Source: Octopus bimaculoides
Lineage: Eukaryota
NCBI RefSeq assembly: GCF_001194135.2
Contig: NC_069003.1
Coordinates: 11,933,039 to 11,969,933 of the forward strand
Direction of reading: 5' to 3'
Length of the DNA stretch: 36,895 nucleotides
Shown piece by piece: positions 3,989-28,389 of this stretch. The notes under the pieces are model-generated. The model worked only from the letters and a program-made list of their open reading frames with translations. It did no database searches and had not been told where the DNA came from. The position numbers and the translations under genes were made by a program. Positions within the stretch are counted from its first letter, which is position 1, and each line of letters begins with the position of its first letter.

Positions 3989-4112
3989 CTGGTATTGTGA
4001 ATATAAACTTGTATTTATCTCTGAATTCAAAACATGTTGTGACATCAAACAATAAAATATCTGGTTCTGTCTCTCTGAAGTTATATATATTCTTTTCCTC
4101 AACTTCATGCGA
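3989..4112 (-). CDS. Coding exon 10 (SHEVEEKNIYNFRETEPDILLFDVTTCFEFRDKYKFIFTIP)
   Basis: T-rich tract then ttttaaacag|TCG; 124 nt phase 0-1; donor CCAG|gtaggt. Confidence 0.88.
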
Positions 4113-4174
4113 CTGTTTAAAAAAAACCCAAAAAACAAAAAGAATGAAATGGCAGTTTACAAGAAAATACTCAT

Positions 4175-4600
4175 ACGAAATCGAAATCGAACTAAATTTG
4201 TAGGAACACTAAACTTGGCTTGCGAAGACCTGTTGGGGCAAGTGAAAGCGAAATCGTGATGGCACCTGTACCAGTGGAGCACTAAGAGCACCGTCCGAGC
4301 GCGATCGTTGCCAGAGCAGCTGTATGGCTTTTGTGCCGGTGGCATGTAAATAGCACCAGCATGATCGTTACCAACGTTGCCTTCTTGGCACTTGTGCCAG
4401 TGGCATGTGAAAAGACATTCGAACAAGATTGTTGCCAGTGCCGATGGATTGGCTCCTGTGCAGGTGGCACGTAAAATACACCATTTTGAGCGTGGCCGTT
4501 GCCAGTACCGTGTGACTGGCCTTCGTGCCAGTGGCACGTAAAAGCACCCACTACGCTCTCGGAGTGGTTGGCGTTAGGAAGGGCATCCAGCCGTGGAAAC
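4175..4600 (+). mobile_element. RTE LINE 3' UTR fragment with ~64-bp tandem subrepeats, inside intron 9
   Basis: Five units starting near 4268, 4333, 4394, 4458, 4525, then the conserved ggagtggttggcgttaggaagggcatccagc block. Confidence 0.75.
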
Positions 4601-4643
4601 AATTAATTAAAGAGTTAAGCTAAATTAACTGCAAAGTACTTAC

Positions 4644-4709
4644 AGTAAGGTCAGTCTGTATCATCAACTTTGGTACTCCATGGGCAGTTTTTCCATAATA
4701 CCACTGGCG
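4644..4709 (-). CDS. Coding exon 9 (RQWYYGKTAHGVPKLMIQTDLT)
   Basis: Acceptor accatctcag|CGC; 66 nt phase 0-0; donor ACT|gtaagt; supplies the G-V-P motif parallel to V-P-V of domain 1. Confidence 0.8.
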
Positions 4710-4807
4710 CTGAGATGGTTATATGCAAAAAAAAAAAAAACCCCAAAAATATAACATTAGACAATTTAGAATTAATATTAACTTTCTTTTAGTTCAAACA
4801 TTTCATA

Positions 4808-5156
4808 TTTTATTTCAATTGTTGGACTGGAGCCATGCTGGAGCACTGCCTCGAAGGGTTTTAGTCGAATGAATTGACCCCAGTACTTTTTGTTTTGAAA
4901 GCCTGGTATTTATTGTACTAATCTCTTTTGCTGAACTGCTAGGTTATGGGGGATGTCAAGTATTTGTGGGATTCACACACACACACACACATATATGATG
5001 GGCTTCTTTCAGTTCCTGTCTGCTAAATCCACTCAAGGCTTTGGTTGACCTGGGGTTATAGTAGAAGACATTTACCCAAGATGCCATGCAGTGGAACTGA
5101 ACCCAAAACTATGTTGGGAAGCAAACTTCTTACTACACAGCCATATATGTACCTAT
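4808..5156 (-). mobile_element. tRNA-derived SINE family A (full length)
   Basis: Reverse complement of the family consensus (A-box TGGCTGTGTGG, B-box GGTTCAGTCCC, core gcaccttgggcaagtgtcttctactatagcc, tail ...ccagcatggc..cagtc..atgactgaaac). Confidence 0.8.
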
Positions 5157-5253
5157 GGGTATATTGCTTCCCTAGTGGGGAATTGAACACTGGCCTACGG
5201 CATGACAGATGGAGACACAACTATACTACCAAGAACAGTTCTCTCTCATATAT

Positions 5254-5400
5254 ATAGGTGTGGGCATGGCTGTATGGTTCCGGGTTCACTTCCACTACAT
5301 GGCACCTTGGACAAGTGTCTTCTACTATAGCCTTGAGCTGACCAGAGACTTGTGAGAGGATTTGCTAGACAGAAACTGAAAGAAGCCTGTTGTATATATA
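5254..5400 (+). mobile_element. SINE A, 5' half
   Basis: ggcatggctgtatggttccgggttcacttcc...gcaccttggacaagtgtcttctactatagcc. Confidence 0.75.
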
Positions 5401-6533
5401 TATCTTGTATATATAAATCAGAGTATGTATGTGTATAATGACTAATGCATACATTTCCACAATTCTCAATCAATTTTCACCAAACTTTATACACACATTA
5501 CTTATGTCCCAAGGATAGTCATGCACTAAACATTTTGCCCAGAGCTTCCGTGTAAATGGACCTTAATAGACATAGATTTTTTGTATGTAGGGTATTCCAT
5601 ACTTAAAAAATTTTTTTTTATAAAAGTGAAAGGATTTTGTCTATTTATTTTGTCTGTCCATCTACAACGGTGATTAAATTAACTAGGAACACTGTACGCG
5701 ATGAATATTCAATACCAAACAATCTTAATTTTTGTAGTTAAACTGCATTAATCTTTGGAAAGCTTACCTTTACCTATTCTGAGTTACTTCAAAGGTGATG
5801 TACCCTTCCCTTTCTTCTATTTGTTGATACCTTTGTTTACCTACCAATGCATTGTTTCATTTTAAGGATGCTTATTTACTCTTGCATTATGATATTTCGA
5901 CTGTTGTCTGTTGTTTCAAATATGTCTTAGCATTGTTGTTCTAACCTTTTTTAAACAATCACATATGATTCGTCCCAAAGAATCAATCTTTAAATAAGAG
6001 TTTTGCTTCCATTAGCGAAAGCTATACATATCTTTCAGAAAGCTCCATACCAATTTAAATTTATGTGGCATTCGCTGTTAGTTTATGCACAGGCTATGAG
6101 GGAAGACGAAATAAAGGAGCTTTTGTTAGCTTATCTCTCCGAAAAAATAGCTCCCTTTGCTGTTGATTAAAATAAACTCACAGAGGGGAAGTTCCAGCAT
6201 CTTCCTTCAATTTCCTTACGCCATTTATGTGGCAGTTTCTGACAAGAAATTTTGCTTTCATGTAAAACAGCTATATTTTGTAGTCATTATTCATAATCTA
6301 TTCCCAAAACACTCCAGCAGCTCTACTTTGCATCGTTTGCAAACTTATATGTTCTATGATCATTAAAGTGCAACGACCTCCACAATAACCAGCCATCAAT
6401 TTGGTTTTCTGTTCCTAAGTTAATCGGAGACATAGATTGCTGTGCTACTCATTAACCTTCTCGGTAGTTCAATTATATGGTGAAGAAAATAACACCAAAG
6501 CAACTTAAACCATCCAAAGGATGGGTGTGTTTG

Positions 6534-6536
<3 letters not shown>

Positions 6537-6575
<39 letters not shown>
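6537..6575. repeat. (TA)n microsatellite; similar (TA)n/(ATAC)n/(CA)n/(GA)n tracts at ~15285-15366, 21883-21937, 26020-26165, 29665-29688, 32900-33045 and at most gap edges
   Basis: Direct reading. Confidence 0.95.
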
Positions 6576-6578
<3 letters not shown>

Positions 6579-6668
6579 TCACCATCATCATCATCATCGT
6601 TTAACGTCCGCTTTCCATGCTAGCATGGGTTGGACGATTTGACTGAGGGCTGGTGAAACCAGATGGCT
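6576..6668 (-). mobile_element. Short RTE 3' end with (GAT)n tail
   Basis: (cat)n-cgtttaacgtccgctttccatgctagcatgggttggacgatttgactgag, almost identical to 7231-7330. Confidence 0.75.
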
Positions 6669-7230
6669 ATATATATATATATGTATTTATATAAAAGTGA
6701 AATTCTGTCTGTCTGTCTGGGTCCCCAGTATCTCAGCCTACATTTGCTCTACATTGACATATTATACCTTTCTGGAATCAGGATGATCCCAGGATGAAAA
6801 TCTGCCCTTCATTTGGTTCTTGAACATTCAGCATTGAGATCAGATTTAAAGGTATTTGTGTTGCTATGTCTAGCAGGTAAAGTTTGGCTGATTGACACCA
6901 TCTTGGTGGCATTTGTCAGATGATGTTGGAGTTCAAGGGAGAGATAAATGACATTCACTTTGTTACTATTATGTCAACATAAGAACTTTGGGACAAGTTG
7001 GCCAACAGTTTGAATTCAACTTGGGACTGGAACAATAGAATGATTGCTTTACAGAATTAATTCTCATCTGTCATTAACCTCTAATCAGACACCACCAGGG
7101 TACATAGTCATTATAGACATATTATAGCCGTGTTATTTACCTCTCTTTAGTTTTGGGTTGCAGGCCCAATTAGCTCTCCACAAAAGCTATCTTAAATGTC
7201 TGCACAGAGTGTGGCTTGTAAGCTAATATA

Positions 7231-7560
7231 TCATCATCATCATCATCATCATCATCATCGTTTAACGTCCGCTTTCCATGCTAGCATGGGTTGGACGATT
7301 TGACTGAGGACTGGTGAAACCGGATGGCAACACCAGGCTCCAGTCTAATTTGGCAGAGTTTCTACAGCTGGATGCCCTTCCTAACGCCAACCACTCAGAG
7401 AGTGTAGTGGGTGCTTTTACGTGTCACCCGCACGAAAACGGCCATGCTCGAAATGGTGTCTTTTATGTGCCACCCGCACAAGCCAGTCCAGGGGCACTGG
7501 CAACGATCTCGCTCGAAAATCCTACGGGAGCCAGTCAGGCGGTACTGGCAACGGCCACGC
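7231..7560 (-). mobile_element. RTE 3' tail with subrepeats
   Basis: Reverse complement of the 4175-4600 and 2622-2836 family; (cat)n tail. Confidence 0.8.
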
Positions 7561-7607
7561 TCTATATATATATATTTATTTATTTATATATTTATTTATT
7601 TATTGTG

Positions 7608-7795
7608 TGTGTCTTTGTGTCTGTGTTTCTCATTTGCCCCACCACCACTAGACAACCAATGCTGGTGTGTTTATGTTCCTGTAACTTAGCCGTTTGGCAA
7701 AAGAGACTGACAGAAAAAGTACTGGGTTCGATTGATTAAACAAAAAATTCTCCAAGGTGGCGCCCTAGCATGGCTGCAGTCTGAAACAAAAGATA
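7608..7795 (+). mobile_element. SINE A, 3' half
   Basis: gacaaccaatgctggtgtgtttatg..tgtaacttagc...ctagcatggctgcagtctgaaac. Confidence 0.75.
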
Positions 7796-7897
7796 TGTGT
7801 GTGCCCCATGCTCACACACCCATGCACACACACACACACACACACACACATGCATGCAAACTAAGATACAGAAGATGGAGTAGTTGTTAGAACTCAC

Positions 7898-8002
7898 TGT
7901 TATAAAATACCATTCAATAATTGATCCTGTCATCAGTGGAAACGTTGGGTAGGTATCGATGTGAGCAACCCAAACATCACAGTCATAACCACGGATACTT
8001 TG
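7898..8002 (-). CDS. Coding exon 8 (QSIRGYDCDVWVAHIDTYPTFPLMTGSIIEWYFIT)
   Basis: Acceptor tttgtctgctttcag|CAA; 105 nt phase 0-0; donor ACA|gtgagt. Confidence 0.9.
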
Positions 8003-8149
8003 CTGAAAGCAGACAAAGAACAACAAAAATATGATTTAATATTCTTACAAAAATTATGGATTTTAACAGAAATAAATAAAAATGTAAAAATCATAATGGT
8101 TCTTTTTTTTATAATTTTTAGATGAGACTGGTCTTTTATAGATTTATTA

Positions 8150-8530
8150 CTTTTCTTATTGGTTTCAGTCATTAGACTGTGGCCATGCTGGGGTACAATC
8201 TTGAAGAATTTTGGTTTTATAAATCAATCCAGTACTTATTTTTTTTTAAAGCCTGGTACTTTATCAGTCACTTTTGCCAAACTGCTAAGCTACAGGAGAT
8301 GTAAACACACCAACACCTGTTGCAAAATGGTGGACAAATACAGACAGAAACACACATACACATATACGACAAGCTTCTTTCAGTTTCCGTCTACCAAATC
8401 CACTCACAAGATTTTGTTTGACTAGAGGCTATAAAAGAAGACATTTGCCCAAGGTGCCACACAGTGGGGCTGAACCAAAAACCATGTGTTGGGAAGCAAA
8501 TTTCTTACCACATAGCCATATCTGTACCAG
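8150..8530 (-). mobile_element. SINE A (full length)
   Basis: Both halves present in reverse orientation. Confidence 0.8.
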
Positions 8531-9277
8531 TTTATTTAACTATTTTTTTCGTCATATTTCTGCTAAAATACACTGCTTTGTTTCATTTAATTCTGAAAAT
8601 AATGAAGAATTTAGCAAAACAATTTTGACATTATTATTAAGGTGGTGCTTGAAGCGTAAGTTGGCACAAAATTTTGATGTAAGGTTTTAATTTCGTCATT
8701 GTCATCAGGTCGAGCTTTCTTGGATATTTATGACTTGCTCATACCATCCATCTCAGTCCTGCAATAGTCCTGCAACGTCTTTAGGGAGGCATCCAGTGTC
8801 TCTGGTGTGTTGATCTACATATGTTTTTTTCAGACAATATGCTCAAATATGTCCATGCTTTGACATCCGTAGCATTAGGTCACTATTTCCATTTCTTGTT
8901 TAACACACTATTAGCCATTTCTTGTTTAACATACCAGCAGTGTTCTACAAAGTGCAAGTTCTTGGCTTTGGGTAAAAGAAAATACAGGTGGACCAGTCAA
9001 TTATGATTTTATTCAACATATTCCCCTCTCATTTAGATTTTACTTGTAATTCAGTTTGGTCACATATTATGTACTGCTGATTCAGCTTGGTAAATTATAT
9101 TAAGGGTACATGTGTCTTTGGAATACTCAGCTATGTATAATTTAATGTGGGGCATTCAAGGCAGTGCCTCAGCACTGTAAAAGATTCACAAGTAAAATAT
9201 TCAGTAGGTAGAACAACTCAATGCTTGTTATTGAAACCATTGGAGGATCTATCATTTATTTTATTTACAAAGCTTTA

Positions 9278-9502
9278 TGAGGGGGTGCTGAATAGTTCTT
9301 GGCTTTAAGGGTATCACAAAAGGCCCAGTTGGAGGCCCAACCTTCTGAGTTCTTTTACAGGGTTTAGAAAAATTGAAGGACTGTCACAGTAAGTGTGTGA
9401 ATCTGAGAGGGGAATATATTGAATAAAATCAATTTTAATTGATTTTCATAATTAATTGTATTTTCTTTTACCCAAAGCCAGGAACGTTTCAGCACCCCTT
9501 CA
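9278..9502. mobile_element. Mariner-derived MITE (related copies at ~8940-9050, 10191-10410, 18511-18730)
   Basis: TA|tgagggggtgctgaatagttcttggcttt ... aaagccaggaacgtttcagcaccccttca|TA; terminal inverted repeats and TA flanks. Confidence 0.7.
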
Positions 9503-9521
9503 TATGTAGAATATTAGAAGG

Positions 9522-9835
9522 GAGTACACGTGGCTTTGTGGTTAGGGTATTCAGTTGACAATTGTAAGGTCTTGAGATCGATTCTCAGCAATATGCTATG
9601 TCCTCGAGCAATATGCTGTATTCCTCATTGCTCCACCCAATTCATCTGGCAAAAATGAGTTGTACCTGTAATACAAAGGGTTATCCTTGCTGCATTCTAT
9701 TTCATGCAGAATCTCCCGGAGAACTATGTAAAAGGCATGTGTGACTGTGGAGTGCTCAGCCACTTGCACAATAGTTTTGCAAGCAGTTTCTTCAGTTGAT
9801 TGTATCAACTGGAAGACTCAGTTAATCGTATTGAT
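9522..9835 (+). mobile_element. Third SINE-like family (tRNA-like head)
   Basis: gtggctttgtggttagggtattc...gagatcgattctc (A/B-box-like), followed by a distinct body. Confidence 0.45.
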
Positions 9836-10190
9836 GGAGAGCCAGGCTGGCTCAGAATATAAGAGCTAGTGCGGCACATAATGAACTGGCAGGTCCCCTA
9901 GCTTCAAAGAATTTAGCTTTGATACCTCGAATTTAACTAGTATCTCCTTTGGCTTATCTGCCTCTTTTATACCAACCCATCTCTTAATCTAGAGTACAAA
10001 ACCACTTGAAGATAGAGTGAGTTGATGAAGAGCAGAGACAGGAAATCAATAGAGTAGATGATGAAGGTATAGGTGATGGGGAGTACTCTTTTCTTTGTCA
10101 CCCACAAACTACTATCTTAAAAAAGGAAATAGTAAAACCAGAGAGAAAGAGGAAGGAAGAACATTTGTTAATGTAGTCCTAGGTATGCTA

Positions 10191-10410
10191 CGAAGGGCTG
10201 CTGAAAAGTTCTTGGCTTTGGGTAAAAAAAACAAAAATACAGGAGGATTAGTTAATTATGATTTTATTCAACATATTCCCTTCTCAGATTCACGCATTTA
10301 CTGCAGTGGTCCTTCATTTTTACTCAGCCCTGTTAAAGAACTTGGAATGTTGAGCCTCCAACCAGGCCTTTCACGATACCCTTAAAGCCAAGAACTTTTC
10401 GGCACCACTT
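10191..10410. mobile_element. Mariner-derived MITE
   Basis: TA|cgaagggctgctgaaaagttcttggcttt ... aaagccaagaacttttcggcacc. Confidence 0.7.
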
Positions 10411-10528
10411 TAATTTGGAATGTCTTTGATGATATGTGTACATGATCAGGCTTCACCTAAGATTAAACAATAACAACAAAGCACTAAAGAGTATCTAGAA
10501 TTGGATCAAATTAACAGCAGGTACTTAC

Positions 10529-10683
10529 CACACCTTCATATGTAAAGATACCCTTATCAACCTTGAAAATCTCTTTTGCAGTGGCCATGTGCTGATTGTG
10601 ATCACCTCTGATATCATCATCATTCCCAAATATGGCTTGCATCGTGCAGTTGCCTCGGATATCATCAATAATGTATGCAACAT
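10529..10683 (-). CDS. Coding exon 7 (DVAYIIDDIRGNCTMQAI...EIFKVDKGIFTYEGV)
   Basis: Acceptor gttatttgcag|AT; 155 nt phase 1-0; donor GTG|gtaagt. Confidence 0.9.
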
Positions 10684-10732
10684 CTGCAAATAACATCAGA
10701 GATAAACTGCAGTGAAAGCTGGAATACAAAAT

Positions 10733-11215
10733 TACTATCTTTTACTTGTTTCGGTAATCAGGCTATGGCCATGTTAGAATACAGCCTTGAAGGATTTTAG
10801 TCAAACAGATTGATCCCAGTACTTATTTTTTAAGTTTGGTACATATTTTCTATTGATTTCCTTTTTTCTTTTTTTTTTGCTGAACTGCTAAGTTATGGGG
10901 GACATAAACAAACCAACACCAGTTGTCAAGTGGTGGATAGGGGGCAAACACAAGCACAAAAGCATACACAGATTGTTTTATATATTCTTTTACTTGTTTC
11001 AGTCATTTGTCTGCGGCCATGCTGGTGCATTGCCTTGAAGGGTTTTAATTAAACAAATCTACCCCAGGATATATTTCTTAAGCCTAGTACTTATTCTATC
11101 GGCCTCTTTTTGCCAAGCTGCTAAGTTACAGGGATGTAAACGTACAAGCACTTGTTGTCAAATGGTGATGGGGGAGGTTAAGACAGACACAAAAGACATA
11201 CATGCATAGATATAT
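10733..11215 (-). mobile_element. Two tandem SINE A 3' halves (~10733-10965 and ~10987-11215)
   Basis: Twice tttacttgtttc..tc...ggccatg...gaagg..ttt...ctgctaagtta...taaac. Confidence 0.75.
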
Positions 11216-11590
11216 NNNNNNNNNNNNNNNNNNNNNNNNNNNNNNNNNNNNNNNNNNNNNNNNNNNNNNNNNNNNNNNNNNNNNNNNNNNNNNNNNNNNN
11301 NNNNNNNNNNNNNNNNNNNNNNNNNNNNNNNNNNNNNNNNNNNNNNNNNNNNNNNNNNNNNNNNNNNNNNNNNNNNNNNNNNNNNNNNNNNNNNNNNNNN
11401 NNNNNNNNNNNNNNNNNNNNNNNNNNNNNNNNNNNNNNNNNNNNNNNNNNNNNNNNNNNNNNNNNNNNNNNNNNNNNNNNNNNNNNNNNNNNNNNNNNNN
11501 NNNNNNNNNNNNNNNNNNNNNNNNNNNNNNNNNNNNNNNNNNNNNNNNNNNNNNNNNNNNNNNNNNNNNNNNNNNNNNNNNNNNNNNNNN

Positions 11591-12871
11591 NTGGCTAGAA
11601 ACTGAGAATAATAAAACCCGAATCCTCCATTCACACTATGCAAAACCTATGGCCTCCAAATACCTGATCCACCGGAACTCGGCTATTGCGGACAATGCCA
11701 AATTCAATATATTGATGGCAGACCTCGTCAGAGTAATGCGAAATGTGTCCTGCATGTGCAACCCTACAGAGTTAAAGAGACATGTACAGCATTTCGTTCA
11801 CCGCATGCAGTTCTCAGGTTACAGCCATAAAGAAAGGATCAGAGTATACAAAGGAGCTATGAAGAAATTTGAAACCATCAAACGTAACGATAGGAATGGG
11901 ATTTGCCCACTCTATAGAAGCAAATCATGGAACACCATTGAAAGGATTAAGAAGAAAATAGGAAAGGCAAACTCATGGTATGATAGCCACAAATACCAGA
12001 GCGTCATGTTCATCGACACCACCCCTAGAGGCGAACTGGCATACCGCTTTAGAAGGGCCCTAGACAAACTTAAGCTAAGAATTAAAGTTGTTGAAAGGCT
12101 AGGCAACCCTATCAAATCCCTTATCAGTAGAACATACCCTTTTAGTAGAACCCCCTGCACTGATAGGAACTGTACTGTATGTAGATTTAGCCGACAAACT
12201 GTAAAACCAGAAATGTGGTCTATAGTATAAAATGTACAGAAGGACGATGCAGTAACAAGACAATGACGTATGTAGGAGAAACAGCACAGAGCATAGGAGA
12301 GCGGGTAAATGAACATTGGAGTGAACTTAAGGAAGAGAAGAGCTCATTAGTTCTGTACCAGCAGGCTGAGCAAGAACACGGAGGCTCACTCAACAACATA
12401 GAAATTAAAATCTTGTCCACACATAGCACAGACGCAGCACTTAGACAAATTACAGAAGCTACACACATAATAGAAGATAAACCTAGCCTGAATAGGAAAC
12501 TGGAATGGAACACTAACACACACTCCTAACAAACCACAACATATGACAATAAATTCCCCATAAACCAATAACAATATGAACAAAATATAATACAATACAT
12601 AGATAAACAAATGGAATTAAATACTACATATGTTAACAAAACAAAATTAAATACAAAAAAAAGTAGGTATAAACACATGAACAAATAAATAAATGAAAAC
12701 AAAAATAAATGAACATGTATTAAAAGAGGATATAGATAATACAGGCACTCCCCATACACACACATGCACTTACAAAACATAGACACACATAGAGGGATAC
12801 GCATGCGTAGACACATACAATAGGAATACAAAATACAAAATGGCTGATCATTAGCAAGGTGGGACACACAT
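11591..12871 (+). mobile_element. Penelope-like retroelement: RT C-terminal region, Cys-rich linker and GIY-YIG endonuclease; antisense in intron 6
   Basis: HYAKPMAS..IH..SA, RMQFSGY, MFIDTTPRGEL, IKVVERLG, CTDRNCTVC, then (after one frameshift at ~12195-12200) NCKTRNVVYSIKC..TYVGETAQSIGERVNEH..RQITEA..LN; stop at 12529; A/C-rich 3' region; gaps on both sides. Confidence 0.88.
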
Positions 12872-13552
12872 NNNNNNNNNNNNNNNNNNNNNNNNNNNNN
12901 NNNNNNNNNNNNNNNNNNNNNNNNNNNNNNNNNNNNNNNNNNNNNNNNNNNNNNNNNNNNNNNNNNNNNNNNNNNNNNNNNNNNNNNNNNNNNNNNNNNN
13001 NNNNNNNNNNNNNNNNNNNNNNNNNNNNNNNNNNNNNNNNNNNNNNNNNNNNNNNNNNNNNNNNNNNNNNNNNNNNNNNNNNNNNNNNNNNNNNNNNNNN
13101 NNNNNNNNNNNNNNNNNNNNNNNNNNNNNNNNNNNNNNNNNNNNNNNNNNNNNNNNNNNNNNNNNNNNNNNNNNNNNNNNNNNNNNNNNNNNNNNNNNNN
13201 NNNNNNNNNNNNNNNNNNNNNNNNNNNNNNNNNNNNNNNNNNNNNNNNNNNNNNNNNNNNNNNNNNNNNNNNNNNNNNNNNNNNNNNNNNNNNNNNNNNN
13301 NNNNNNNNNNNNNNNNNNNNNNNNNNNNNNNNNNNNNNNNNNNNNNNNNNNNNNNNNNNNNNNNNNNNNNNNNNNNNNNNNNNNNNNNNNNNNNNNNNNN
13401 NNNNNNNNNNNNNNNNNNNNNNNNNNNNNNNNNNNNNNNNNNNNNNNNNNNNNNNNNNNNNNNNNNNNNNNNNNNNNNNNNNNNNNNNNNNNNNNNNNNN
13501 NNNNNNNNNNNNNNNNNNNNNNNNNNNNNNNNNNNNNNNNNNNNNNNNNNNN

Positions 13553-13587
<35 letters not shown>

Positions 13588-13673
13588 CACACTGTGTGGA
13601 GAAATTAGGCTATGAGTGAAAGAAAGACAATAATGTAATAATAATTATATAATATAATAAACGATATAGTTAC

Positions 13674-14334: not shown

Positions 14335-14945
14335 CTTTTGTGGTATGGTCTTGAAGAACTTTAGTCAAACAAATCAATCTCAGTACTTATTTTTTTAAAG
14401 CCTAGTTCTTATTCTATCAGTCTCTTTTACCAAACCACTAAGTTAAGGGGACATAAACATACAGGCACTTGTTGTCGAGAGGTGGTAAGAGTCAAACACA
14501 GACACAAAGACAAACATGTATATGTGATGGGCTGTTTTCAATTTCAGTCAACCAAATCCATTCACAAGGCTTTGGCTGACCTGGGGTTATAGTAGAAGAC
14601 ACCTGCTCATGGTGTCACGCAGTGGGACTGAACTCAGAATGAAGTAGTTGGGAAGCAAACTTCCTACCGCACAGTCATATTTGCACCTACAAAAAATTGA
14701 ATATATCCATACACAGGTGTAGGAATGGCTGTGTGGATAGGCGCTGGCGTGGCTGGTGTGGAAAGAAGCTCGTTTTTCAAGCAAATGGGTCTGGGTTCAG
14801 TCCCACTGTGTAGCACCTCGGGCAAGTGTCTCCTACTATAGCCTTGGGCTGACCAAAGCCTTGTAAGTGGATTTGGGAGACAGAAGTTGAAAGAAACCTG
14901 TTGTATATATATGTATATATTCATGTGAGTGTCTTTGTGTCTGTG
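14335..14945. mobile_element. Head-to-head SINE A pair (- ~14335-14690, + ~14712-14945)
   Basis: Minus copy ends at its tRNA head near 14690; the plus copy starts aggtgtaggaatggctgtgtgg near 14714. Confidence 0.8.
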
Positions 14946-15365: not shown

Positions 15366-15722
15366 NNNNNNNNNNNNNNNNNNNNNNNNNNNNNNNNNNN
15401 NNNNNNNNNNNNNNNNNNNNNNNNNNNNNNNNNNNNNNNNNNNNNNNNNNNNNNNNNNNNNNNNNNNNNNNNNNNNNNNNNNNNNNNNNNNNNNNNNNNN
15501 NNNNNNNNNNNNNNNNNNNNNNNNNNNNNNNNNNNNNNNNNNNNNNNNNNNNNNNNNNNNNNNNNNNNNNNNNNNNNNNNNNNNNNNNNNNNNNNNNNNN
15601 NNNNNNNNNNNNNNNNNNNNNNNNNNNNNNNNNNNNNNNNNNNNNNNNNNNNNNNNNNNNNNNNNNNNNNNNNNNNNNNNNNNNNNNNNNNNNNNNNNNN
15701 NNNNNNNNNNNTTTTCTTATTG

Positions 15723-16978: not shown

Positions 16979-17115
16979 CTCAAATATTGGTTTCTCTGTC
17001 AATATGTAAGGCTTGTAGTGGAAAAACTCAAACTGGTATTCAAGAGCCTCCCCATCACTGTCCTTTCCTTTCATGTGAAGTCTCACTGGTGTCACAGGTA
17101 CTGAATCTTCTGTTG
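16979..17115 (-). CDS. Coding exon 4 (ATEDSVPVTPVRLHMKG...YQFEFFHYKPYILTEKPIFE)
   Basis: Acceptor tttcttttcag|CA; 137 nt phase 1-0; donor GAG|gtatga. Confidence 0.9.
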
Positions 17116-18730: not shown

Positions 18731-18846
18731 TACATGGCTTTCCCAGCTGGTGAGGGTGTAACCTCAAGGTACAAGGTAAATATAAAGAGAGAATAGGGAC
18801 AGAAAAACAAGAAGGGTAGGCACACATATAATTTTTTCCAACTTAC

Positions 18847-19080
18847 CAAAATACCAAGTCGTTGTTACAGTTGCTTTCATGCTTGGTAAATACTGACATG
18901 CTGACCATACTGATGTACTGACACCTCGGTCAATGACTGTGGTTTTCTCTTTGACCTTGAAGAAATTTGTCTCTGCCAGTTCAATTGCTCCCGCAAGTGA
19001 GAAGAAACGTCCATTGGAGATTTCCTCTCCAAACAAGTACTTATTTGGTTTCTTCCACAAATCAGTTATTCTGCATGCCC
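18847..19080 (-). CDS. Coding exon 3 (GACRITDLW...RGVSTSVWSACQYLPSMKATVTTTWYF)
   Basis: Acceptor ctcttacttttattcag|GG; 234 nt phase 1-1; donor TTTG|gtaagt. Confidence 0.9.
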
Positions 19081-19353
19081 CTGAATAAAAGTAAGAGTCG
19101 TAACCAGCAATGCCATACCTTAATTAATATCAATATCATCATCAAATGAGTCACCAGTGTACTAATGCTGAAAATAGTGAAAATACATTTAGCATTATGT
19201 CTTTTGATTGCAGTTATTTGACTACACACAAAAACATAGACTCCTACTGTGTAAAGGAGCAACTAAAAAGGCTTAAAACTATTCTAAAAAATCACAAGGA
19301 TTGAACATGTCCACTATACCATGGCAAATTTTGGAATAGGATAGTTAGAAATA

Positions 19354-19570
19354 TTCCTTTCTATTATAGGCACAAGACCTGACGTTTTGGAGGAGGGGTT
19401 TTAGTCAATTACATTAACCCCAGTGCTTCTCGACTGGTACTTATTTTATCGACCCCAAAAGGATGAAAGGCAAAATTGACCAAGGCAGAATTTGAACTCA
19501 GAACATAAGGACATGAAATACCATGAAGCATTATGCTCAGCACGCTAACAATTTTGCCAGTTTGCCACCT
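19354..19570 (-). mobile_element. tRNA-derived SINE family B with a 17-bp TSD
   Basis: taggatagttagaaata at 19337-19353 and 19571-19587; minus-strand head with B-box gagttcaaattc; core gcctttcatccttttggggtcgataaaataagtacc. Confidence 0.85.
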
Positions 19571-20493
19571 TAGGATAGTTAGAAATAATAAGATAACTAA
19601 AACCAGTACTTGGTGCAATAAGAATGGGTTTGATAGCGTAATTTTTATGGCTGCATCACCAAATAGCAAATTAGCTAATAGAATTTAGGAAAAATCCTCC
19701 AAGAAACTAACCTCAAAATCAAATGTCACAGAGAAAACTGGTAAATTTATGGAATCAGTTTTCTTTGTCTGTCTTACATTTTGACAGTGACACCTGTAAA
19801 AATGGCTGAAAAAAATTTGTGCTACCACCCCACCTATTGGTATACCATATGAAGTGCTAAAAGGAATCATGTGCAAATCTCTCTAAAATTGATATAGGAA
19901 AGACAGTTTGAAGTATTAGTGAAAGATTCTATGAGCAACGGAACAGTGATACTGAAAAAAAACTTCATTCCAATTTTTTCACTGACATGGATTAGATAAA
20001 TACAATGGTTTAGTCAAGAAATTCAGTGTGGGGATCATGAACTACAAATTTCTATGACACAGTACTAAGGTAACTGAATCAGTTTACATACGAAAATACA
20101 AACCCAGTTTCAACCATAAGTTAGAAGTAGGTACACCAGTGCATCTCAAACAAGTGTATATTTGCCTTTCTTACTTAAATTAGTTTTATACATTTCTGTG
20201 TATATATATATATATGTATATATGTGTACAAAATGGCAACAATTTACCCATCACACCATGTGTGTGTGTGCCTATATATATNNNNNNNNNNNNNNNNNNN
20301 NNNNNNNNNNNNNNNNNNNNNNNNNNNNNNNNNNNNNNNNNNNNNNNNNNNNNNNNNNNNNNNNNNNNNNNNNNNNNNNNNNNNNNNNNNNNNNNNNNNN
20401 NNNNNNNNNNNNNNNNNNNNNNNNNNNNNNNNNNATATATATTGACACACACACATGGTGTGATGGGTAAATATATATAAAGACACGCATACA

Positions 20494-21359
20494 CATGGTG
20501 TGATGGGTAAATTGTTGCCATTTTGTATTTTTAATTTTGCACATGCACATTGTTTCTTTTTGATTTTGTTGACTACGCAGTATAGGAGGGTTAGCTGGGC
20601 ACCATGTGCGAGAAAAACAGCATCATGACACAATTCACTCTGCCAGAAATTTGGAAACGACATGCTGTACTGCTTGGCTTCTACACTGGAAGCTCCAATA
20701 TGAACATTTCAGAGTGTTTGGGTGTCAATCAGAGGACTTGTACTGAGAGTGATAAAAATCAAAGATCCAATTAACATTATGGTGTTTGGAATGATCACTA
20801 GTGATGGTGATGTTATTGCTGCATACATCTTCCCACATGGCCTAAGATTCAACATGGAGGCCTACATCAAGTACCTGGAGGAGGTAGTGCTGTCTTGGGT
20901 CAGGAGGGTGGCTGCTGGAAGACCCTATTTCTGGCAACTGGACTCTGCACCATGCCACACAAGCAGGAGAACCCAGTCATGGCTGTCAGATAATTTCGGT
21001 GACCACATCATCCCTAACATCTGGTCACCTAACTCCCCAGACTGCAACTTCCTTGCTTATTATGTGTGGGACGCAGTTGAGCGAGAGACCAACAAAACTC
21101 CTTGTAACATCATAGATGAACTGAAGGCAAAGATTATGGCAGCATTCCCTAAGTTAAACAAGAAGACTGTCCAGAAAAGTTACAGGAAATTCTGAAGTTG
21201 TCTGGAGGCTGTGGTTGAAGCCAATGGCGATTTTATTGAATAAATTTACTCCTTAAATACTTCAAGATATTTTTATGTAATTTTAGTAAATATATCTGTT
21301 AAAATGAGATGTCAGTGTTACTTTCATTATTAAACAACAGTTTATTCATTGCACCGTGT
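20494..21359 (+). mobile_element. Internally deleted Tc1/mariner DD37D (maT-type) transposon, copy 1
   Basis: WQLDSAPCHTS...WSPNSPDCNFLA(D)YYVW with 37 residues between the 2nd and 3rd catalytic positions; TIR catggtgtgatgggtaaattg and degenerate ...ttttattcattgcaccgtg followed by TA. Confidence 0.85.
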
Positions 21360-21881
21360 ATATACATGTATATTAATTGTAGTGTACAGCATTATATATC
21401 TATTACGGCCAATGTTACCAATCGGTTTCACACTGGGTTTCAACAGAGTGTTAGATAACTGCCAATTATGTTGCCCTGTGCTCTTGATAGCTGGCAATTA
21501 CGGAAGAAAATATGGTGGCTGCTCTCGAATGTGGGAGGTAAAAAAACGCATCTTGTTTGTGGTTGCCCTGAGAAAAGATTAAACAAACTACAGAAGGGCT
21601 AAGTCAGGAGTTATGTCCCTTGGAAATGTGTGTAGGTTTAGGGGATGATATTCATGTAGGGTTGGAATGTGTGCAGTAAAACTATATGTGGTGTTTTTGG
21701 AGGTTGGGATAGGGATGGAGTTGCTGGGCAGATGTCCAAGGGGCACAGGAGTGCTTGTGTGTGTATTTTTTATATTTTGGATAACGCCTTTGGAGTATAT
21801 GTGTAGGATTATATTGGGGGAGGAAAGGAGTGGTATTGTGTGGATTTTGCATGTTTGGGCCCATGTAAGGGTGCATATGTA

Positions 21882-21938
<57 letters not shown>

Positions 21939-21943
21939 GGCTA

Positions 21944-22312
21944 AGGCATAGGCATGGCTAGGTAGCTTGCTTCTCAAATCATGTGGTTTTGGGTTCAGTG
22001 CCACTGCATGGTACCTTGCTCAAATGTCTTCTATTATAACCCTGAGCCAACTGATGCCTTATGAGTGAATTTGGTAGATGGAAATTGAGTGGGAGTCTAT
22101 TGTATATATTATATATATGTGTGTGTGTAAGAGAAAGTTTGTCCTCCCCTCCCCAATGTCTGACACCTAGTGTTGGTTTGTTTATGTCCCTGTAACTTAA
22201 AGGTTCTATAGAAAAAAAAAATATCAACACTGGGGGTGATTTATTTGAGTAAAACCCTCCAGGGCGGTGCTCAAGCATGGCTGCAGTCCAATGACTGAAA
22301 CAAGAAAAAGGA
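21944..22312 (+). mobile_element. SINE A (full length), just inside intron 2
   Basis: Head ggcataggcatggct..., core and tail ...gcatggctgcagtccaatgactgaaac. Confidence 0.8.
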
Positions 22313-22370
22313 ATATAATAAATGAATGAATGAATTTTTCAATGATTAATCGATAACTTATGGTGTTTAC

Positions 22371-22571
22371 CATCTTGTGATACAGTAAACATCTCTCCAG
22401 TACTCTGGAAGAGGTAGACGTCTGTTTTTGAATCTTGTTGGCTTCGTTTGATGACATTGGCTCCTTTGCTTGTATCATGGTACTCGGTGAAATGTACGGT
22501 GGATTTGTTTGAAATGTAATTAGCCTCTATGAATACACTGTATTGAGGGTCTAGTTTGGGAAAACTGTCAT
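22371..22571 (-). CDS. Coding exon 2 (DDSFPKLDPQYSVFIEANYISNKSTVHFTEYHD...FTVSQD)
   Basis: Long poly-T tract then ccag|AT; 201 nt open in phase 1-1; donor GATG|gtaaac. Confidence 0.9.
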
Positions 22572-22607
22572 CTGGAAAAAAAAAAAAAAAGAATTAATTA
22601 ATAAACA

Positions 22608-23005
22608 TATAGGCACAGGAATGGCTGTGGTAAGTAGCTTGCTTACCAACCATATGGTTCCGGGTTCATTCCCACTGCGTGACACCTTGGGCAAGTGTCT
22701 TCTACTATAGCCTCAGGCTGACCAAAGCCTTGTGAGTGGATTTGGTAGACGGAAACTGAAAGAAGCCCATCATATATATATATATGTATGTATGTTTGTG
22801 TGTCTGTGTTTGTTCCCCCAACATCGCTTGACAACCGATGCTGGTCTGTTTACGTCCCCGTAACTTAGCGGTTCAGCAAAAGAGACTGATAGAATAAGAA
22901 CTAGGCTTCCAAAGCATAAGTCCTGGGGGTCAATTTGCTTGACTAAAGGTGGTGCTGCAGCATGGCCACAGTCAAATGACTGAAACAAGTAAAAGAGTAA
23001 ACAAA
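22608..23005 (+). mobile_element. SINE A (full length), just inside intron 1
   Basis: Close to consensus throughout. Confidence 0.85.
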
Positions 23006-23009
23006 GCAA

Positions 23010-23340
23010 ATGAAATGATTTGATCATCATCATCATCATAGTTCTAATCATGCTCACACTATCGTTACCATGATCATGTCATCATCATCTTCATCCCCAT
23101 CACGACCACCGTGACTAATGATGACCATGACCTCCATGACAACCACCTTCACCATGACAACAATGATAACCAACACCACCACCACAATCTTCACTACCAC
23201 ACAACCACTAACACTATTGCCACAACAGTTACCACAAGTACTGCCACCACCATCACTGCCAACGCAATCATTACCTCCACCACTGTCATCATGACAATCG
23301 CCACAAGCACCATCATCCCTACCTCCACCATCAATGACTT
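23010..23340. repeat. Degenerate (CAT/CAC/CAA) trinucleotide low-complexity tract
   Basis: Triplet periodicity that produces spurious His/Thr-rich ORFs. Confidence 0.85.
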
Positions 23341-23426
23341 GTGTGTGGCATGAGGAAATTTGTCTGCTATTTCTATCAGGCTGAGCAACCAGATACAGGC
23401 TCCACTGTTGGTTTGTGTATGTTTAA

Positions 23427-23654
23427 CTCTTTAGCGTTCAGATTTCTCTGTCAAATGTAATTTTAATTTATTCACATTGATATGGATTAGTCATGCATTA
23501 CTTTGTAGCTTTGAGATTTTAATGACATGATTATGTAATTTCAATTTTGAGGATAATATTACAAGGGAAGTGTAAGAGGCTGGATCTGGCCAATTTAAAG
23601 GTAAAACAGGGCTGAATATTTTGGCCAGATATGATCAGATTAAATGCTAAATGA
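23427..23654. mobile_element. piggyBac-like MITE (TTAA target); further copies 23811-24013, 35953-36249, ~36730-36800
   Basis: TTAA|ctctttagcgttc ... aatgctaaatga|TTAA; sister copies read ccctttagc... and ...gctaaaggg. Confidence 0.65.
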
Positions 23655-23810
23655 TTAAAGTTTATTATTACATTTCACTAGCTCCAGTTATTGAACTGTA
23701 GCATCAGGTTCAATAGAATTAATCAACCATATTGAAGCTTCTACTTATATCAATATCTTGCATTGATTTAAATTTATCGAAAGGCTAAGTTACCAATTTT
23801 GAAAACGTAA

Positions 23811-24013
23811 CCCTTTAGTATCCAGACTCCTCTAATGCTTATTTATTCACATTGTTTTGAATTAATCACAGCTTATTTTGGAAATTTCAATGATGTGATT
23901 GTTTATTTTTAGATTAAGATTGTAGGGTAAGTGTGAGAAGCTGGATCTGGCCAGTTTGGCGATTAAACAGGGAGAATATTTTATCCAGATATAGTTGGTT
24001 TAAATGCTAAAGG
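23811..24013. mobile_element. piggyBac-like MITE
   Basis: gtaa|ccctttagtatcc ... taaatgctaaagg|TTAA. Confidence 0.65.
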
Positions 24014-24287
24014 TTAAACATTGAAATTTTCAGTGAAGTTTCTTACTCTCCTACCAAAGCTTTTTAGGCATGCAAGAAAGTTGTGCTCATAACCCTTAAA
24101 AGGGCCTCTGAGAACCATGGTCGGGAGGATCTGACCTGAAGGCTTGCAACAGAGTGGTCTCCACTAAAGATACTCAAGATGCCAGGTGGAGGTGTTAAAT
24201 TGGGCAACAGATTCTGTCTGTTATTCAAACAGACCACAGTGGGATTTGAAGTCAGAACCTCTCAGAGAGCCAAAATAAATACCACAA

Positions 24288-24690
24288 GGCACAAGCATAG
24301 CTATGCGGATTAGAAACTTTATTTGCAACTACATGATTTGGGGTTCAGTCCCACTGAGTGGCTTCCTAGGCAAGGGCCTTCTACTCTAACTCTGGGCTGA
24401 CCAATACGTTGTGAATAAAATTTGGTAGATGGAAACCGTGTGGAAGCCTATCTTATATGTAGATGTGTGTGTGACTGTGTTTGTCACTCCACCCCACTGC
24501 TTGTCAACCAGTGTTGGTTTATTTATGTCCCTGTAATGTAGCATTTTGGCAAAAGAGACCAATAGAATAAGTATTAGACTTTTTTAAAAAAAACTTTAAG
24601 TATTGGTGTTGGTTCATTTAAAACCCTTTGAAGAAGTGCTCCAGCATGACCACAGCTGAATGATTGGAAGAAATAAAAGATAACAAAAAG
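24288..24690 (+). mobile_element. SINE A (diverged, full length)
   Basis: gggttcagtcccactgagtgg...ctccagcatgaccacagctgaatga. Confidence 0.75.
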
Positions 24691-24921
24691 GTATCTGGTG
24701 TGATTCTTTTACAATTACAACAGTGTACCATCTTGGATTAGTACCTATATTTATCAATTCCCTCTAAAAAACGAAAAGCAAAGCTAATCTTGACAGGAAT
24801 TGAACTTAGAATGCAAGCTCTCAGGAGATATACAACAAGGCATTTTAGTTGATTTTGTAATGACTTTGTCAAATCATCGCTTAATTTAAAATTAATATGG
24901 AGCACTTAATTATCTTCTATT

Positions 24922-25150
24922 GTTTACTTGTTTCAGTTATTGGACTGCAACCATGCTGGGGTATTGCCTTGAATGGTTTAGTCGAACAAATTGACTGCTC
25001 AATACTTATTTTTGTTTAAAGTCTGGCATTTATTCTTTTAGTCTCTTTTGCTGAGCCACTAGGTTATGGGGACATAAACAAACTGACACCAGCTGTCAAG
25101 CAGTGGAGGAGGACAAACACAAATATAAAGACATACAAATATATATACAA
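24922..25150 (-). mobile_element. SINE A 3' half, abutting maT copy 2
   Basis: ttacttgtttcagttattggactgcaaccatgctgg... Confidence 0.75.
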
Positions 25151-25155
25151 ACATA

Positions 25156-26019
25156 CAGGATGTGATGGGTAAATTGTTGACGTTTTATATATTTAATTAC
25201 ATGCATGTGCAGTATAGTAGGGTCAGTTGGACACCGTCTGTGAGAAAAACAGCACCATAATGCAATGCACTCTGCCAGAAATTTGGAAATGACATGCTGT
25301 GCTGCTTGGCATTCGTGCTGGAAGCTCCAATATGAACAGATGGTGAACACAGAACGACCATTGGCTTTCGGTGTCTCCAAAACATGTACCAAGTGTGATA
25401 AAAAATCAAACATCCAGTCAACATCATGCTGTTTGGAGTGATCGCTAGTGATGGCGATGTTATGCCTCCATTCATAGCGTTATGTCTCCACATGGCCTCG
25501 GACTCAACATGGAGGCCTACATTAAGTACCTGGAGGAGGTAGTACTGCTCTGAGTCAAGAGGGTGGCTGCTGGAAGACCCCTATGTCTGGCAACGGGACT
25601 CTGCACCATGCCACACAAGCAGGAGAACACAGTCATGGCTGTCAGACAATTTCTGCGACCACATCACCCCTAATATCTGGCCACCTAACTCCCCAGACTG
25701 CAGCCCCCTTGATTATTATGTGTGGGACACAGTTGAGCAAGAGACCAACAAAACTTGTAATTCCAAAGATGAACTGAAGGCAAGGATTATAACAGCATTC
25801 CCCAAGTTAAACAAGGAGGCTGTCCAGAAGAGTTGCAGAAGATTCTGAAGTCATCTGAAGGCTGAGGTTGAGGCCAATGGCGATTTTATTGAATAAATTT
25901 ACTCTTTACTATTTCAAAATATTTTTATGTGATTTTGGTAATTATATCTGTTAAAATGAGACATCTGTATTATTTTCATTTTTGCATAATTTAAAAGACA
26001 ATTTATTCACCACATCTTG
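25156..26019 (+). mobile_element. Internally deleted DD37D (maT-type) transposon, copy 2
   Basis: TA|caggatgtgatgggtaaattg ... caatttattcaccacatcttg|TA; DSAPCHTS and WPPNSPDCSPLDYYVW; contains stops and frameshifts. Confidence 0.88.
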
Positions 26020-26159
26020 TATATATGTATGTGTGTGTGTATACATATGTATATATAAGTATATATTATGTATATGTATGTATATATCTATATGTATATA
26101 TTATATATATGTATGTTTATATGTGTATGTACATGTATATATGTACATATATATGCATA

Positions 26160-26318
26160 CATATGACAAGGTTCTACACAATTTCCATCAACCAGATTCA
26201 CTCAACTAGGCTTGTATTAGTCCAGGACTATAGTAGAAGACACTTGCTGTGTAGTGGGACTGAACCCAAAGCTATAGAATTGCAAAGCGAGCTTTGTAAC
26301 CACATAGCCATGCCTATA
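26160..26318 (-). mobile_element. SINE A 5' half
   Basis: actatagtagaagacacttg..cagtgggactgaaccc-like block and cacatagccatgcctata. May be the other half of the copy at 24922-25150, split by maT copy 2. Confidence 0.7.
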
Positions 26319-26996
26319 ATTAATTGATAAAAGAAGAAAAAGTATGACAAACATTAATTTTAATTATAAATTTTAAAATAAACTTCACATCATGTTTCCA
26401 TGGAAACAACTACCCCAGGTAACATGTATTTGTGGGAGAAATGCTTGGTGTGCATGTCTGATGCTAATTATTATTGTAATCAGTTGTTATTGCTTCGTTA
26501 AGGCACTGGAATAAATTTCCTCCTCCTGTTAATTAGCAATTTGGATCAATTACCTCTGCATGCATCACGTTGAAGAAGGAAACATCTCAAGGAGAAATTT
26601 ATAGTGGGTGTATATGTGTGTATGTGTTCATGTATGTGCATGTCTATGTCTGTGTGTGTGTATGTGCATGTGTAGTCGTGTATGTATGTGTGTAAATGTG
26701 CATATGTGTGTGTCTGAATGTTCATGTGTGTGTGTATTTTTCAGTAGCATAGAAAAATGAGGAAAATATTAAACAAAAAAAAAAAAAGGTGACATTAAAT
26801 TTGTGATTATGAATTTGCTAAATCTTAACAAACAATTTGCCAACACAATTATATGCACAAGCATATTCAGAATAATAACATATGGTTGGGTAGTTGAGAA
26901 GTTATCTTCATGATCATGTTGGGTTCAACTAAAGGTGCCTTGGTCCATGAGGAAAATACTTTCTATCATAGTCCCAAATCAACTAACTGTCTTGCT

Positions 26997-27509
26997 CAAT
27001 GGTTGTCAACCAGGGTCCATATAAGATTTTTGGAGGCCCATGTAACAAAATAGTAAATTTGGGATCCACAATAGTATTTTCAGGGCCCCTGAAAAAACCC
27101 TGGCTTAGATGTATGTATTGGTATATATTGCAAGAAACAGCTGGGTTTCTTTCTCTAACATTTTACATAGTCCAACCTACACAAGTTAATGTCATCATCA
27201 TCATCATCATCATCGTTGTTTAACGTCCACTTTCCATGCTAGCATGGGTTGGACAATTTGACTGAGGAATGGTGGACCAGGAGGCGACACCAGGCTCCAG
27301 TCTGATTTGGCAGAGTTTCTACAGCTGGATGCCCTTCCTAACGCCAACCACTCCGAGTGTGTAGTGGGTGCTTTTGAAAAACAAAATAGGAATTTGGAAA
27401 AAAGTTTCTATAAAATTAGTTTTTAAACATTGAATGGCTATGGGTGTCCACCGGAATAAGATAGTGATCAAAGGGGTCCATAGATTAAAAAAATGGTTGA
27501 GAACTCCTG
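26997..27509. mobile_element. hAT (Charlie-type) MITE
   Basis: TIRs caatggttgtcaacc / ggttgagaactcctg; 8-bp flanks gtcttgct (left) and gtctagac (right, matching the NTCTAGAN Charlie target). Confidence 0.65.
27192..27376 (-). mobile_element. RTE 3' tail nested inside a hAT-like MITE
   Basis: (cat)n-gtttaacgtccactttccatgctagcatgggttgg...cctaacgccaaccactccgagtgtgtagtgggtgctttt. Confidence 0.8.
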
Positions 27510-27844
27510 GTCTAGACAGAAATGGACTGTATCTGTTGACCTATTGTTGGAGGTAGACTTAATGCATAGCTTGTTTTAGTATCTTAGTAGCAGAAATTGC
27601 TCCAGTTTCCTAAAATTATGAACTCTCTATGACTGGATTTGATTGGATTGCCTATGCTCAGTCTGTTGCAAGATGAAAACCTTAACATGTTCTTTCCATG
27701 AACCCTGGTCTCATGTGGAGGCTATGGATTTGTACTTCAGATCATACTGGTTTAATGAGCCCACTCTACTACACTGGCTCAACAAGGCTTGGCTTAGGGG
27801 TGTGGTTTGTATACTCTTACCCAGTAGTTAAATCGAATACATCA

Positions 27845-27996
27845 AACCAGTTTTCAACTGGTACCTATTTTATTGACCCCAAAAGGATGAAAGGCAAAGT
27901 TGGCCTTGGTAGAATTTGAACTCCGAACATAAGGACAGATAAAATACTGCTAAGTATTTCACCCAGCATGTTAATGATTCTGCCAGCTTGCCGTCT
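27845..27996 (-). mobile_element. SINE B (partial)
   Basis: ggtacctattttattgaccccaaaaggatgaaaggcaaagt...gattctgccagcttgccg. Confidence 0.75.
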
Positions 27997-28286
27997 ACAA
28001 CAGTGACCCTTAAACTGATAAATAAGTGTACCCCCACAGAAAAGTAGTGAAAATGCTTTGCATCCCCACTTACTGTAAAAGATATCTTTATCTTTTATTC
28101 AAAATGTAAGAACCACACTAAATATTCATTACACATCTAATACTGCTACTCATTAAAACTGCACCAAAGCAGTTGTTAATGACTTTCACCATAAGACACA
28201 AATCTAAAAACAAGATAAAGAAACGAGACCAAAAAAAGCAAAAAGAAATAAATATAGTTGAAACTTCCATTTAAAAAAATACTTAC

Positions 28287-28389
28287 CAATGTTTGTTGTG
28301 TTTGATTTACAGACTTGCGGATCAAATATTGCTTGGATGTTTGTCACAAAGGTGAGCAGCAGAAACAAAAGGTAAGTGGAAGGATTCAT
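28287..28389 (-). CDS. Coding exon 1: signal peptide and N-terminus (MNPSTYLLFLLLTFVTNIQA-IFDPQVCKSNTTNI)
   Basis: ATG at 28389; hydrophobic core YLLFLLLTFV ending in I-Q-A (signal-peptidase-like); donor ATTG|gtaagt (phase 1); acceptor gatttcag| 5 nt before the ATG. Confidence 0.85.

Follow-up and report, generated by a model that had tools for sequence, protein, structure and literature searches.

Does the chain of ten short exons that can be read on the minus strand of a 36,895-nucleotide (nt) stretch of the Octopus bimaculoides genome (NC_069003.1, positions 11,933,039 to 11,969,933; the whole stretch is called the window here and is numbered from its first letter) belong to a real gene and, if so, what kind of protein does this gene encode? 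A preliminary description, made from the letters alone, had proposed that these exons form a hidden gene for a secretory-pathway protein with tandem ependymin/LolA-like domains. We find that the window carries exons 1-10 of a 13-exon gene, of which exons 11-13 (~120 amino acids, aa) lie outside, and that the part within the window encodes two homologous domains of ~210 aa, each of which is, in the predicted structure, an 11-stranded (6+5) LolA-type half-barrel closest to the ependymin-related proteins (EPDRs). It is a member of a conserved, uncharacterised family that occurs in molluscs, amphioxus and rotifers.

The ten-exon frame is part of a conserved gene

The motifs listed in the preliminary description were assigned to the minus strand by a six-frame motif search, and the ten exons were rebuilt independently from 28389 to 3989 by splice-site scoring combined with phase bookkeeping. 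Once spliced, the exons amount to 1360 nt, which translate into an open frame of 453 aa. They are flanked by AG at nine of nine acceptors and by GT at ten of ten donors, and every one of these sites scores at or above approximately the 90th percentile of all AG or GT sites in the window. The frame contains eight cysteines (positions 27, 104, 163, 232, 250, 316, 363 and 439) and the sequons NTT30, NKS56 and NCT315. The number of exons, the length of the frame, the cysteine count and the sequons given earlier were all reproduced exactly by this rebuild.

An identical dynamic-programming search performed on the opposite strand returned an open chain of 1539 nt. An open ten-exon chain of such length can arise by chance and it is homology that constitutes the proof; a statistical control on the open ten-exon chain did not separate real from chance, and this argument was dropped. 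An exhaustive HMMER search identified 331 relatives at E<=1e-3, including 53 at E<=1e-30, with matches covering residues ~10 to 453 (a word-indexed protein search with a partial concatenation of the exons found nothing). Upon end-to-end alignment with 36 relatives no block was missing, and C104, C163, C232, C316 and C439 were invariant. When 150 relatives were compared with the window by tblastn, exons 2 to 8 and exon 10 were matched by 25 to 128 proteins each and no comparable matches were found elsewhere in the window.

The locus of Octopus sinensis (referred to as L001) provides a comparison at closer range. It carries ten exons equal in length to those of O. bimaculoides, with no indels or stops and with the AG/GT flanks conserved. 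Over the 1360 nt, the two species differ by 82 nucleotides and 46 amino acids, and the synonymous divergence (dS) is 0.13, the nonsynonymous divergence (dN) 0.046 and dN/dS 0.36. Because the exons are free of indels, their flanks are conserved and dN/dS is 0.36, we conclude that the gene is real and evolves under purifying selection. That the chain is a pseudogene in decay, or a frame left open by chance, could be argued from the ten-exon open chain of similar length that can be built on the opposite strand, and from the conservation of the exons, which is barely above that of the aligned intron blocks (94% versus 84-94%). Against this stand the 331 homologues, a confident fold prediction and the absence of any indel or stop over 1360 nt in two species with conserved splice sites and constrained coding sequence; this explanation is therefore exceedingly improbable and is, to our satisfaction, already refuted.

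Two homologous domains with a predicted LolA-type fold

Seven motifs had been reported to recur in the same order in two repeats of the protein. Six of them do occur once per half and in identical order, whilst the seventh, F..P..F...C, is literal in neither half, the corresponding segments being FETPRGTVC in domain 1 (D1) and FRETEPDILLFDVTTC in domain 2 (D2). The internal repeat is visible only by profile-profile comparison: with family profiles, D1 and D2 align in hhalign with a probability of 99.6% and an E-value of 7.7e-24. When the structure was predicted by AlphaFold with the family alignment, the mean predicted local distance difference test (pLDDT) was 83.2 and the predicted template-modelling (TM) score (pTM) was 0.78; the prediction made without the alignment had a pLDDT of 30 and was not usable. 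Analysis of the model by DSSP assigned to each half six strands, a helix and five strands. In Foldseek searches against the PDB, the best 16 matches were all ependymin-related (sponge EPD-BCP1 and human, mouse and frog EPDR1; E ~1e-6, TM score 0.56-0.68 on the target), and they were followed by LolA, VioE, RseB and LprG (E 1e-5 to 1e-3). At the level of fold, the tandem ependymin/LolA-like domains of the preliminary description are thus borne out, as two LolA/EPDR-like half-barrels with an internal repeat were predicted and no unrelated fold.

Kinship with the ependymins was also sought by sequence. D1 aligned with a profile of 110 vertebrate EPDR1 sequences over 160 columns and in a plausible register (E 3.3e-4, probability 38%); an EPDR1 alignment of three sequences was too weak when used in hhalign. 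Sub-threshold matches to Pfam Ependymin were found in 10 of 37 relatives (best E 5.8e-4), more than to any other family; Pfam scans of fragments gave no ependymin match. Given the modelled structure, the kinship is supported at the level of fold and superfamily, and not as Pfam membership.

The EPDRs (PF00811; human EPDR1, PDB 6E7O, 6E8N and 6JLD) have in common with the octopus domains the 11-stranded 6+5 sheet, which in EPDR1 is laid out as shelf-I and shelf-II strands (PMC6363788), a signal peptide and cysteines that would match the positions of the C113-C210 bond, and their motifs follow a register similar to that of the gene (P.QW/P.QF, YD..N.R, G/Q.C, VQEW/V..W, YPV/VPV and VF.PP/FETP). 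In contrast, identity with the octopus protein is 11-16%, the latter does not reach the Pfam threshold, and the EPDRs are single-domain proteins forming non-covalent homodimers whereas the octopus chain has two diverged domains and a third one. The median length of EPDRs is 213 aa (PMC6280359); the octopus protein is not a single-domain protein of ~200 aa, since two domains are seen in 453 aa and the orthologue has 573 aa. The invariant pairs C104/C232 and C316/C439 are located on strand 6 and in the C-terminal tail of each domain. C104 aligns with C113 of EPDR1 and, by position in the model, both pairs would correspond to the conserved C113-C210 bond of EPDR1, the bonds themselves being predicted. 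A second pair, C27 and C163, is present in D1, with C163 off the position of C172 in EPDR1, and no second pair is conserved in D2; the other disulfide of EPDRs, C42-C172, has no counterpart at an equal position in the octopus protein. Bacterial proteins of the LolA superfamily have no disulfides (PMC6363788). The bacterial LolA/LolB superfamily (LolA, VioE, RseB and LprG) shares the half-barrel fold with the octopus domains but has no detectable sequence similarity to them (10-12% identity), and its cellular context and partners differ. The likeness to the bacterial lipoprotein carriers is one of fold only, the octopus gene being eukaryotic and spliced.

The preliminary description had taken longer, multi-domain relatives of the ependymins as established. 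In one review, multi-domain ependymin models are treated as annotation artefacts in which tandem genes have been mis-joined (PMC6280359), and that source does not establish such relatives. Fusions of this kind reported in other genomes raise the question of whether the two-domain protein described here results from the joining of two neighbouring single-domain ependymin genes. Several features argue against it: exon 5 by itself carries both the last part of D1 and the first part of D2, the chain has a single signal peptide, D1 precedes D2 in molluscs, amphioxus and a rotifer alike, and full-length relatives are encoded on transcript-sized contigs (~2.2 kb). We regard a fusion artefact as extremely unlikely here, and the reality of two-domain ependymin-like proteins can now be argued clearly.

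Organization of the exons

All ten exons are on the minus strand (splice points are marked below by a slash). Exon 1 (28389-28287) starts with the ATG at 28389 and encodes the putative signal peptide MNPSTYLLFLLLTFVTNIQA, the near-invariant Cys27 and the sequon NTT. It ends at the donor TTG/GTAAGT in phase 1, and is 94% identical to exon 1 of O. sinensis, with equal length. The N-terminus has a hydrophobic core and all of the 36 aligned relatives also begin with a hydrophobic segment, which suggests, in agreement with the first proposal, that an N-terminal signal peptide directs the protein into the secretory pathway. Exon 2 (22571-22371), in phase 1 at both ends, opens D1 with P.L...YS...E, EYHD and the sequon NKS; it received tblastn matches from 33 relatives and has a counterpart of equal length in O. 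sinensis. The core of D1 is encoded by exon 3 (19080-18847; matches from 128 relatives) and includes GAC with the invariant Cys104, RG.....W, the invariant Cys163 and WYF. Exon 4 (17115-16979) encodes strands 10-11 of D1 (SVPV...). It is preceded on the minus strand by tandem acceptors at 17109 and 17115, 6 nt apart (TTTCAG/CAACAG/), which could give isoforms differing by two residues; the acceptor at 17115 is supported by the orthologue and by the public model, both of which read WYFATEDSVPV.

Exon 5 (16604-16482) contains the end of D1 (TPRGTVC, with the invariant Cys232) together with the start of D2 (KPLPDFPDVFS), and it was found in O. sinensis as well as in 108 tblastn matches from relatives. 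The remainder of D2 is distributed over five exons. Exon 6 (13785-13674; 78 matches) encodes EEYD...IHDYNI and ends in phase 1 at a weak donor, TTG/GTAACT, whose GT is conserved in O. sinensis. Exon 7 (10683-10529; 91 matches) carries GNCT, that is the invariant Cys316 and a sequon conserved throughout the family, and exon 8 (8002-7898; 85 matches) carries RGYDCDVW ... EWYF. Exon 9 (4709-4644) corresponds to a variable loop of D2 (RQWYYGKTAHGVPKLMIQTDLT) and is supported by near relatives only, namely the public model and O. sinensis (77% amino-acid identity). Exon 10 (4112-3989; 108 matches) completes D2 with the invariant Cys439 and ends at a donor in phase 1.

Comparison with the public gene models

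The gene was first thought to be hidden. It is in fact catalogued in UniProt, RefSeq and Pfam, and the best match, identical over the shared exons, is the O. bimaculoides entry A0A0L8FG05 of UniProt ("LolA-like domain-containing protein"). This entry has 418 aa, is devoid of exon 5 and ends in GRMLFY. The ending results from the use of an alternative donor 5 nt downstream (GGTAG/GTTGCA, 3984-3989) and of a five-codon exon at ~2467-2450 on the minus strand (RMLFY and a stop). The five-codon exon is not conserved in O. sinensis and is located within a 2.5-kb stretch (912-3421) that has no syntenic counterpart there; a prediction artefact, or else an isoform peculiar to O. bimaculoides, is the probable explanation. 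LOC115223611, the orthologue of O. sinensis, is a 573-aa protein with 90% identity, and the boundaries of its high-scoring segment pairs coincide with all ten exons. Exon 5, although absent from the public O. bimaculoides model, is thus confirmed by the orthologue and by more than 100 relatives. Pfam PF25898 (LolA_2nd_metazoa) is precomputed for the public model and the orthologues; our own Pfam scan of the protein and its relatives did not return it. The ten-exon model is an improvement over the public entry for O. bimaculoides, which can be corrected by the addition of exon 5 and, probably, by the replacement of its five-codon terminal exon by exons 11-13. In conclusion, the preliminary description had read the locus carefully and correctly, and the gene is an ordinary one that was already catalogued.

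The 3' end of the gene lies outside the window

The same description had the gene complete in ten exons. Position 3989 is, however, a strong splice donor (CAG/GTAGGT, phase 1) and not the end of the gene. In the orthologue, exon 10 is followed by ...VP/AKHTQ (G/CN = Ala) and 120 more residues are encoded by exons 11-13. The interval 1..3988 on the minus strand is a partial intron 10, which includes the five-codon exon of the public model. Neither exons 11-13 nor a membrane-anchor exon were detected in window positions 1-3988 by tblastn and a C-terminal hidden Markov model (HMM); this HMM does detect exons 11-13 in O. sinensis. Since synteny places window position 645 at L001 31986 and exon 11 is at L001 33117, exon 11 is located beyond the window start. 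In the orthologue, ~2.3 kb separate exon 11 from exon 10. Reading through the donor at 3989 to a stop at 3897 was considered and rejected, as the added segment does not truly resemble the relatives and the donor itself is conserved. The domain DUF7959 (PF25899) was not found in the window; in O. sinensis it is encoded by exons 11-12, whose mapped position is outside the window, past its start, and the absence of this domain is a limit of the window and not of the gene.

No hydrophobic segment is present at the end of the O. sinensis orthologue model, and no membrane-anchor exon was detected within 5 kb downstream of it. In its last exon, at L001 37270-37290, a donor-like site (GAA/GTAAAAG) is present just before the stop, from which splicing to another exon, such as one encoding a membrane anchor, is conceivable.

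A family of mostly membrane-anchored proteins

Most relatives are type I membrane proteins of ~620 aa (range ~610-660 aa) with an extra ~100-aa domain (DUF7959), a transmembrane helix and a short tail, and some reach ~1250-1400 aa and contain two matched stretches. The named members are all "uncharacterized", literature searches under the family names and accessions found nothing, and no vertebrate members were present among the sampled relatives. Homology to members of this metazoan LolA-like family, such as O. sinensis LOC115223611, Magallana gigas K1R990 and Branchiostoma belcheri LOC109467529, is full-length (E 1e-67 to 1e-14) and extends to the D1-D2 order, the invariant cysteines and the GNC[TS] motif. 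A transmembrane helix at the C-terminus is common to most of them but is missing from the octopus orthologue model.

Paralogues were noted in both octopus species. An anchored one, LOC106872607, is found in O. bimaculoides. In O. sinensis, a paralogue of 648 aa (L001 1-2947, minus strand), in which the same Pfam domains are present, is arranged head to head with the orthologue, ~7 kb upstream of it. No exons of this paralogue were found by tblastn in the matching upstream part of the window (28390-36895), and its O. bimaculoides counterpart is probably located beyond the window end.

Assembly gaps and repeats in the introns

The window is eukaryotic DNA interrupted by eight runs of N. Four of them are within 28389-3989 and all four are intronic: 20282-20434 in intron 2, 15366-15711 in intron 5, and 12872-13552 and 11216-11591 in intron 6. 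Their counterparts in O. sinensis contain no exon and, as the protein aligns gaplessly to the orthologue, no coding sequence has been lost in the four gaps.

The introns also contain possible remnants of mobile elements. Between the two gaps of intron 6, two overlapping open reading frames (ORFs) of a retroelement-like insertion are present on the plus strand (11592-12529). The second ORF (12215-12529) has a weak match to a GIY-YIG endonuclease (E 0.001, below the Pfam cutoff), as found in Penelope-like elements, and the insertion has no counterpart in the O. sinensis intron. Two related ORF remnants are located on the plus strand at 20722-21195 in intron 2 and at 25583-25848 in intron 1 (…DSAPCHTSRRTQSWLSDNFGDHI… and …NKT.CN..ELKA.I..AFPKLNK..VQKS.R.F); both resemble by eye the C-terminal part of a mariner/Tc1-type transposase, and Pfam gave no match. 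A short interspersed repeat of ~160-400 bp, with 70-90% identity between copies, occurs in the introns and flanks of both octopus loci, including window positions ~22600-23000, 30270-30660, 8147-8518, 14359-14677, 4974-5143 and 33715-33967, among others. It is present in more than 15 copies in L001 and often adjoins assembly gaps, together with TA/CA microsatellites.

Proposed function of the two-domain protein

The ligands of EPDR1 are anionic lipids and the ganglioside GM1, and those of LolA are the acyl chains of lipoproteins. EPDR1 possesses a hydrophobic groove and binds liposomes (PMC6363788), and the sponge ependymin-related protein EPD-BCP1 binds carotenoids (PMC10470211). By analogy with these three proteins, each domain of the octopus protein may offer a hydrophobic groove, and the protein would bind or carry lipids or other hydrophobic small molecules, either extracellularly or in the lysosome. 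Joined covalently in one chain, D1 and D2 may play the part that two separate subunits play in the EPDR1 homodimer. Taken as a whole, the reading of this locus as a 13-exon gene for a secretory-pathway protein with two LolA-type domains, acting as a groove-based binder or carrier of lipids or hydrophobic ligands, is the one we favour, with a measure of reserve.

A number of points weigh against this reading. The grooves and the binding of a ligand are proposed by analogy, the gene model is genomic and comparative rather than drawn from O. bimaculoides transcripts, and whether the protein is soluble or anchored depends on the 3' end of the gene, outside the window. The two halves had no significant similarity in pairwise BLASTP (E 0.69), and the fold search gives one domain-sized match per target rather than a match for each half separately. 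Pfam Ependymin (PF00811, gathering score 32.3 bits) did not match the protein or its halves even at E<=10, EPDR1 was reached among PDB sequences neither by the single sequence nor by the family profile, and the comparison of D2 with the 110-sequence EPDR1 profile was not significant (E 0.043). Moreover, some proteins with the LolA fold are sensors (RseB) or enzymes (VioE) and not carriers.

According to the main rival, the two LolA-like domains are the interaction or sensing ectodomain of a receptor or adhesion molecule, similar to RseB, with the ligand serving as a signal and not as cargo. Such a role would suit the type I membrane topology of most family members, with their juxtamembrane domain and short cytoplasmic tail; RseB is among the fold matches, and the pTM of the model suggests a fixed two-domain body. 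However, the nearest structures belong to soluble proteins that bind lipids or pigments, a membrane anchor is absent from the octopus orthologue model, and the cytoplasmic tails are short and not conserved, so that we regard a receptor or sensor as conceivable but doubtful. A secreted pigment-binding protein comparable to the blue carotenoprotein of sponges is a much weaker candidate. EPD-BCP1 (PDB 8I34) is the single best fold match and it is an invertebrate, secreted protein in which a LolA-type groove holds a hydrophobic ligand; carotenoids are bound by ependymin-related proteins in sponge (PMC10470211). Its lead over human EPDR1 is nevertheless negligible (8.4e-07 versus 8.8e-07), it has a single domain with 13% identity, the family is widespread in animals for which no such pigment is known, and nothing in the octopus protein suggests pigment binding; this explanation is very unlikely.

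A bolder proposal is that D1-D2 is an intramolecular copy of the EPDR1 homodimer and that the family consists of unrecognised cell-surface or lysosomal two-groove lipid handlers. We consider this improbable; if it were true, the secreted single-domain ependymins would be the soluble relatives of a mostly membrane-tethered family. For biology at large little is changed; the databases already contained both the gene and the type of domain that it encodes. What the analysis does is to flag a conserved and unstudied invertebrate family, the fold of which points to lipid or pigment binding.

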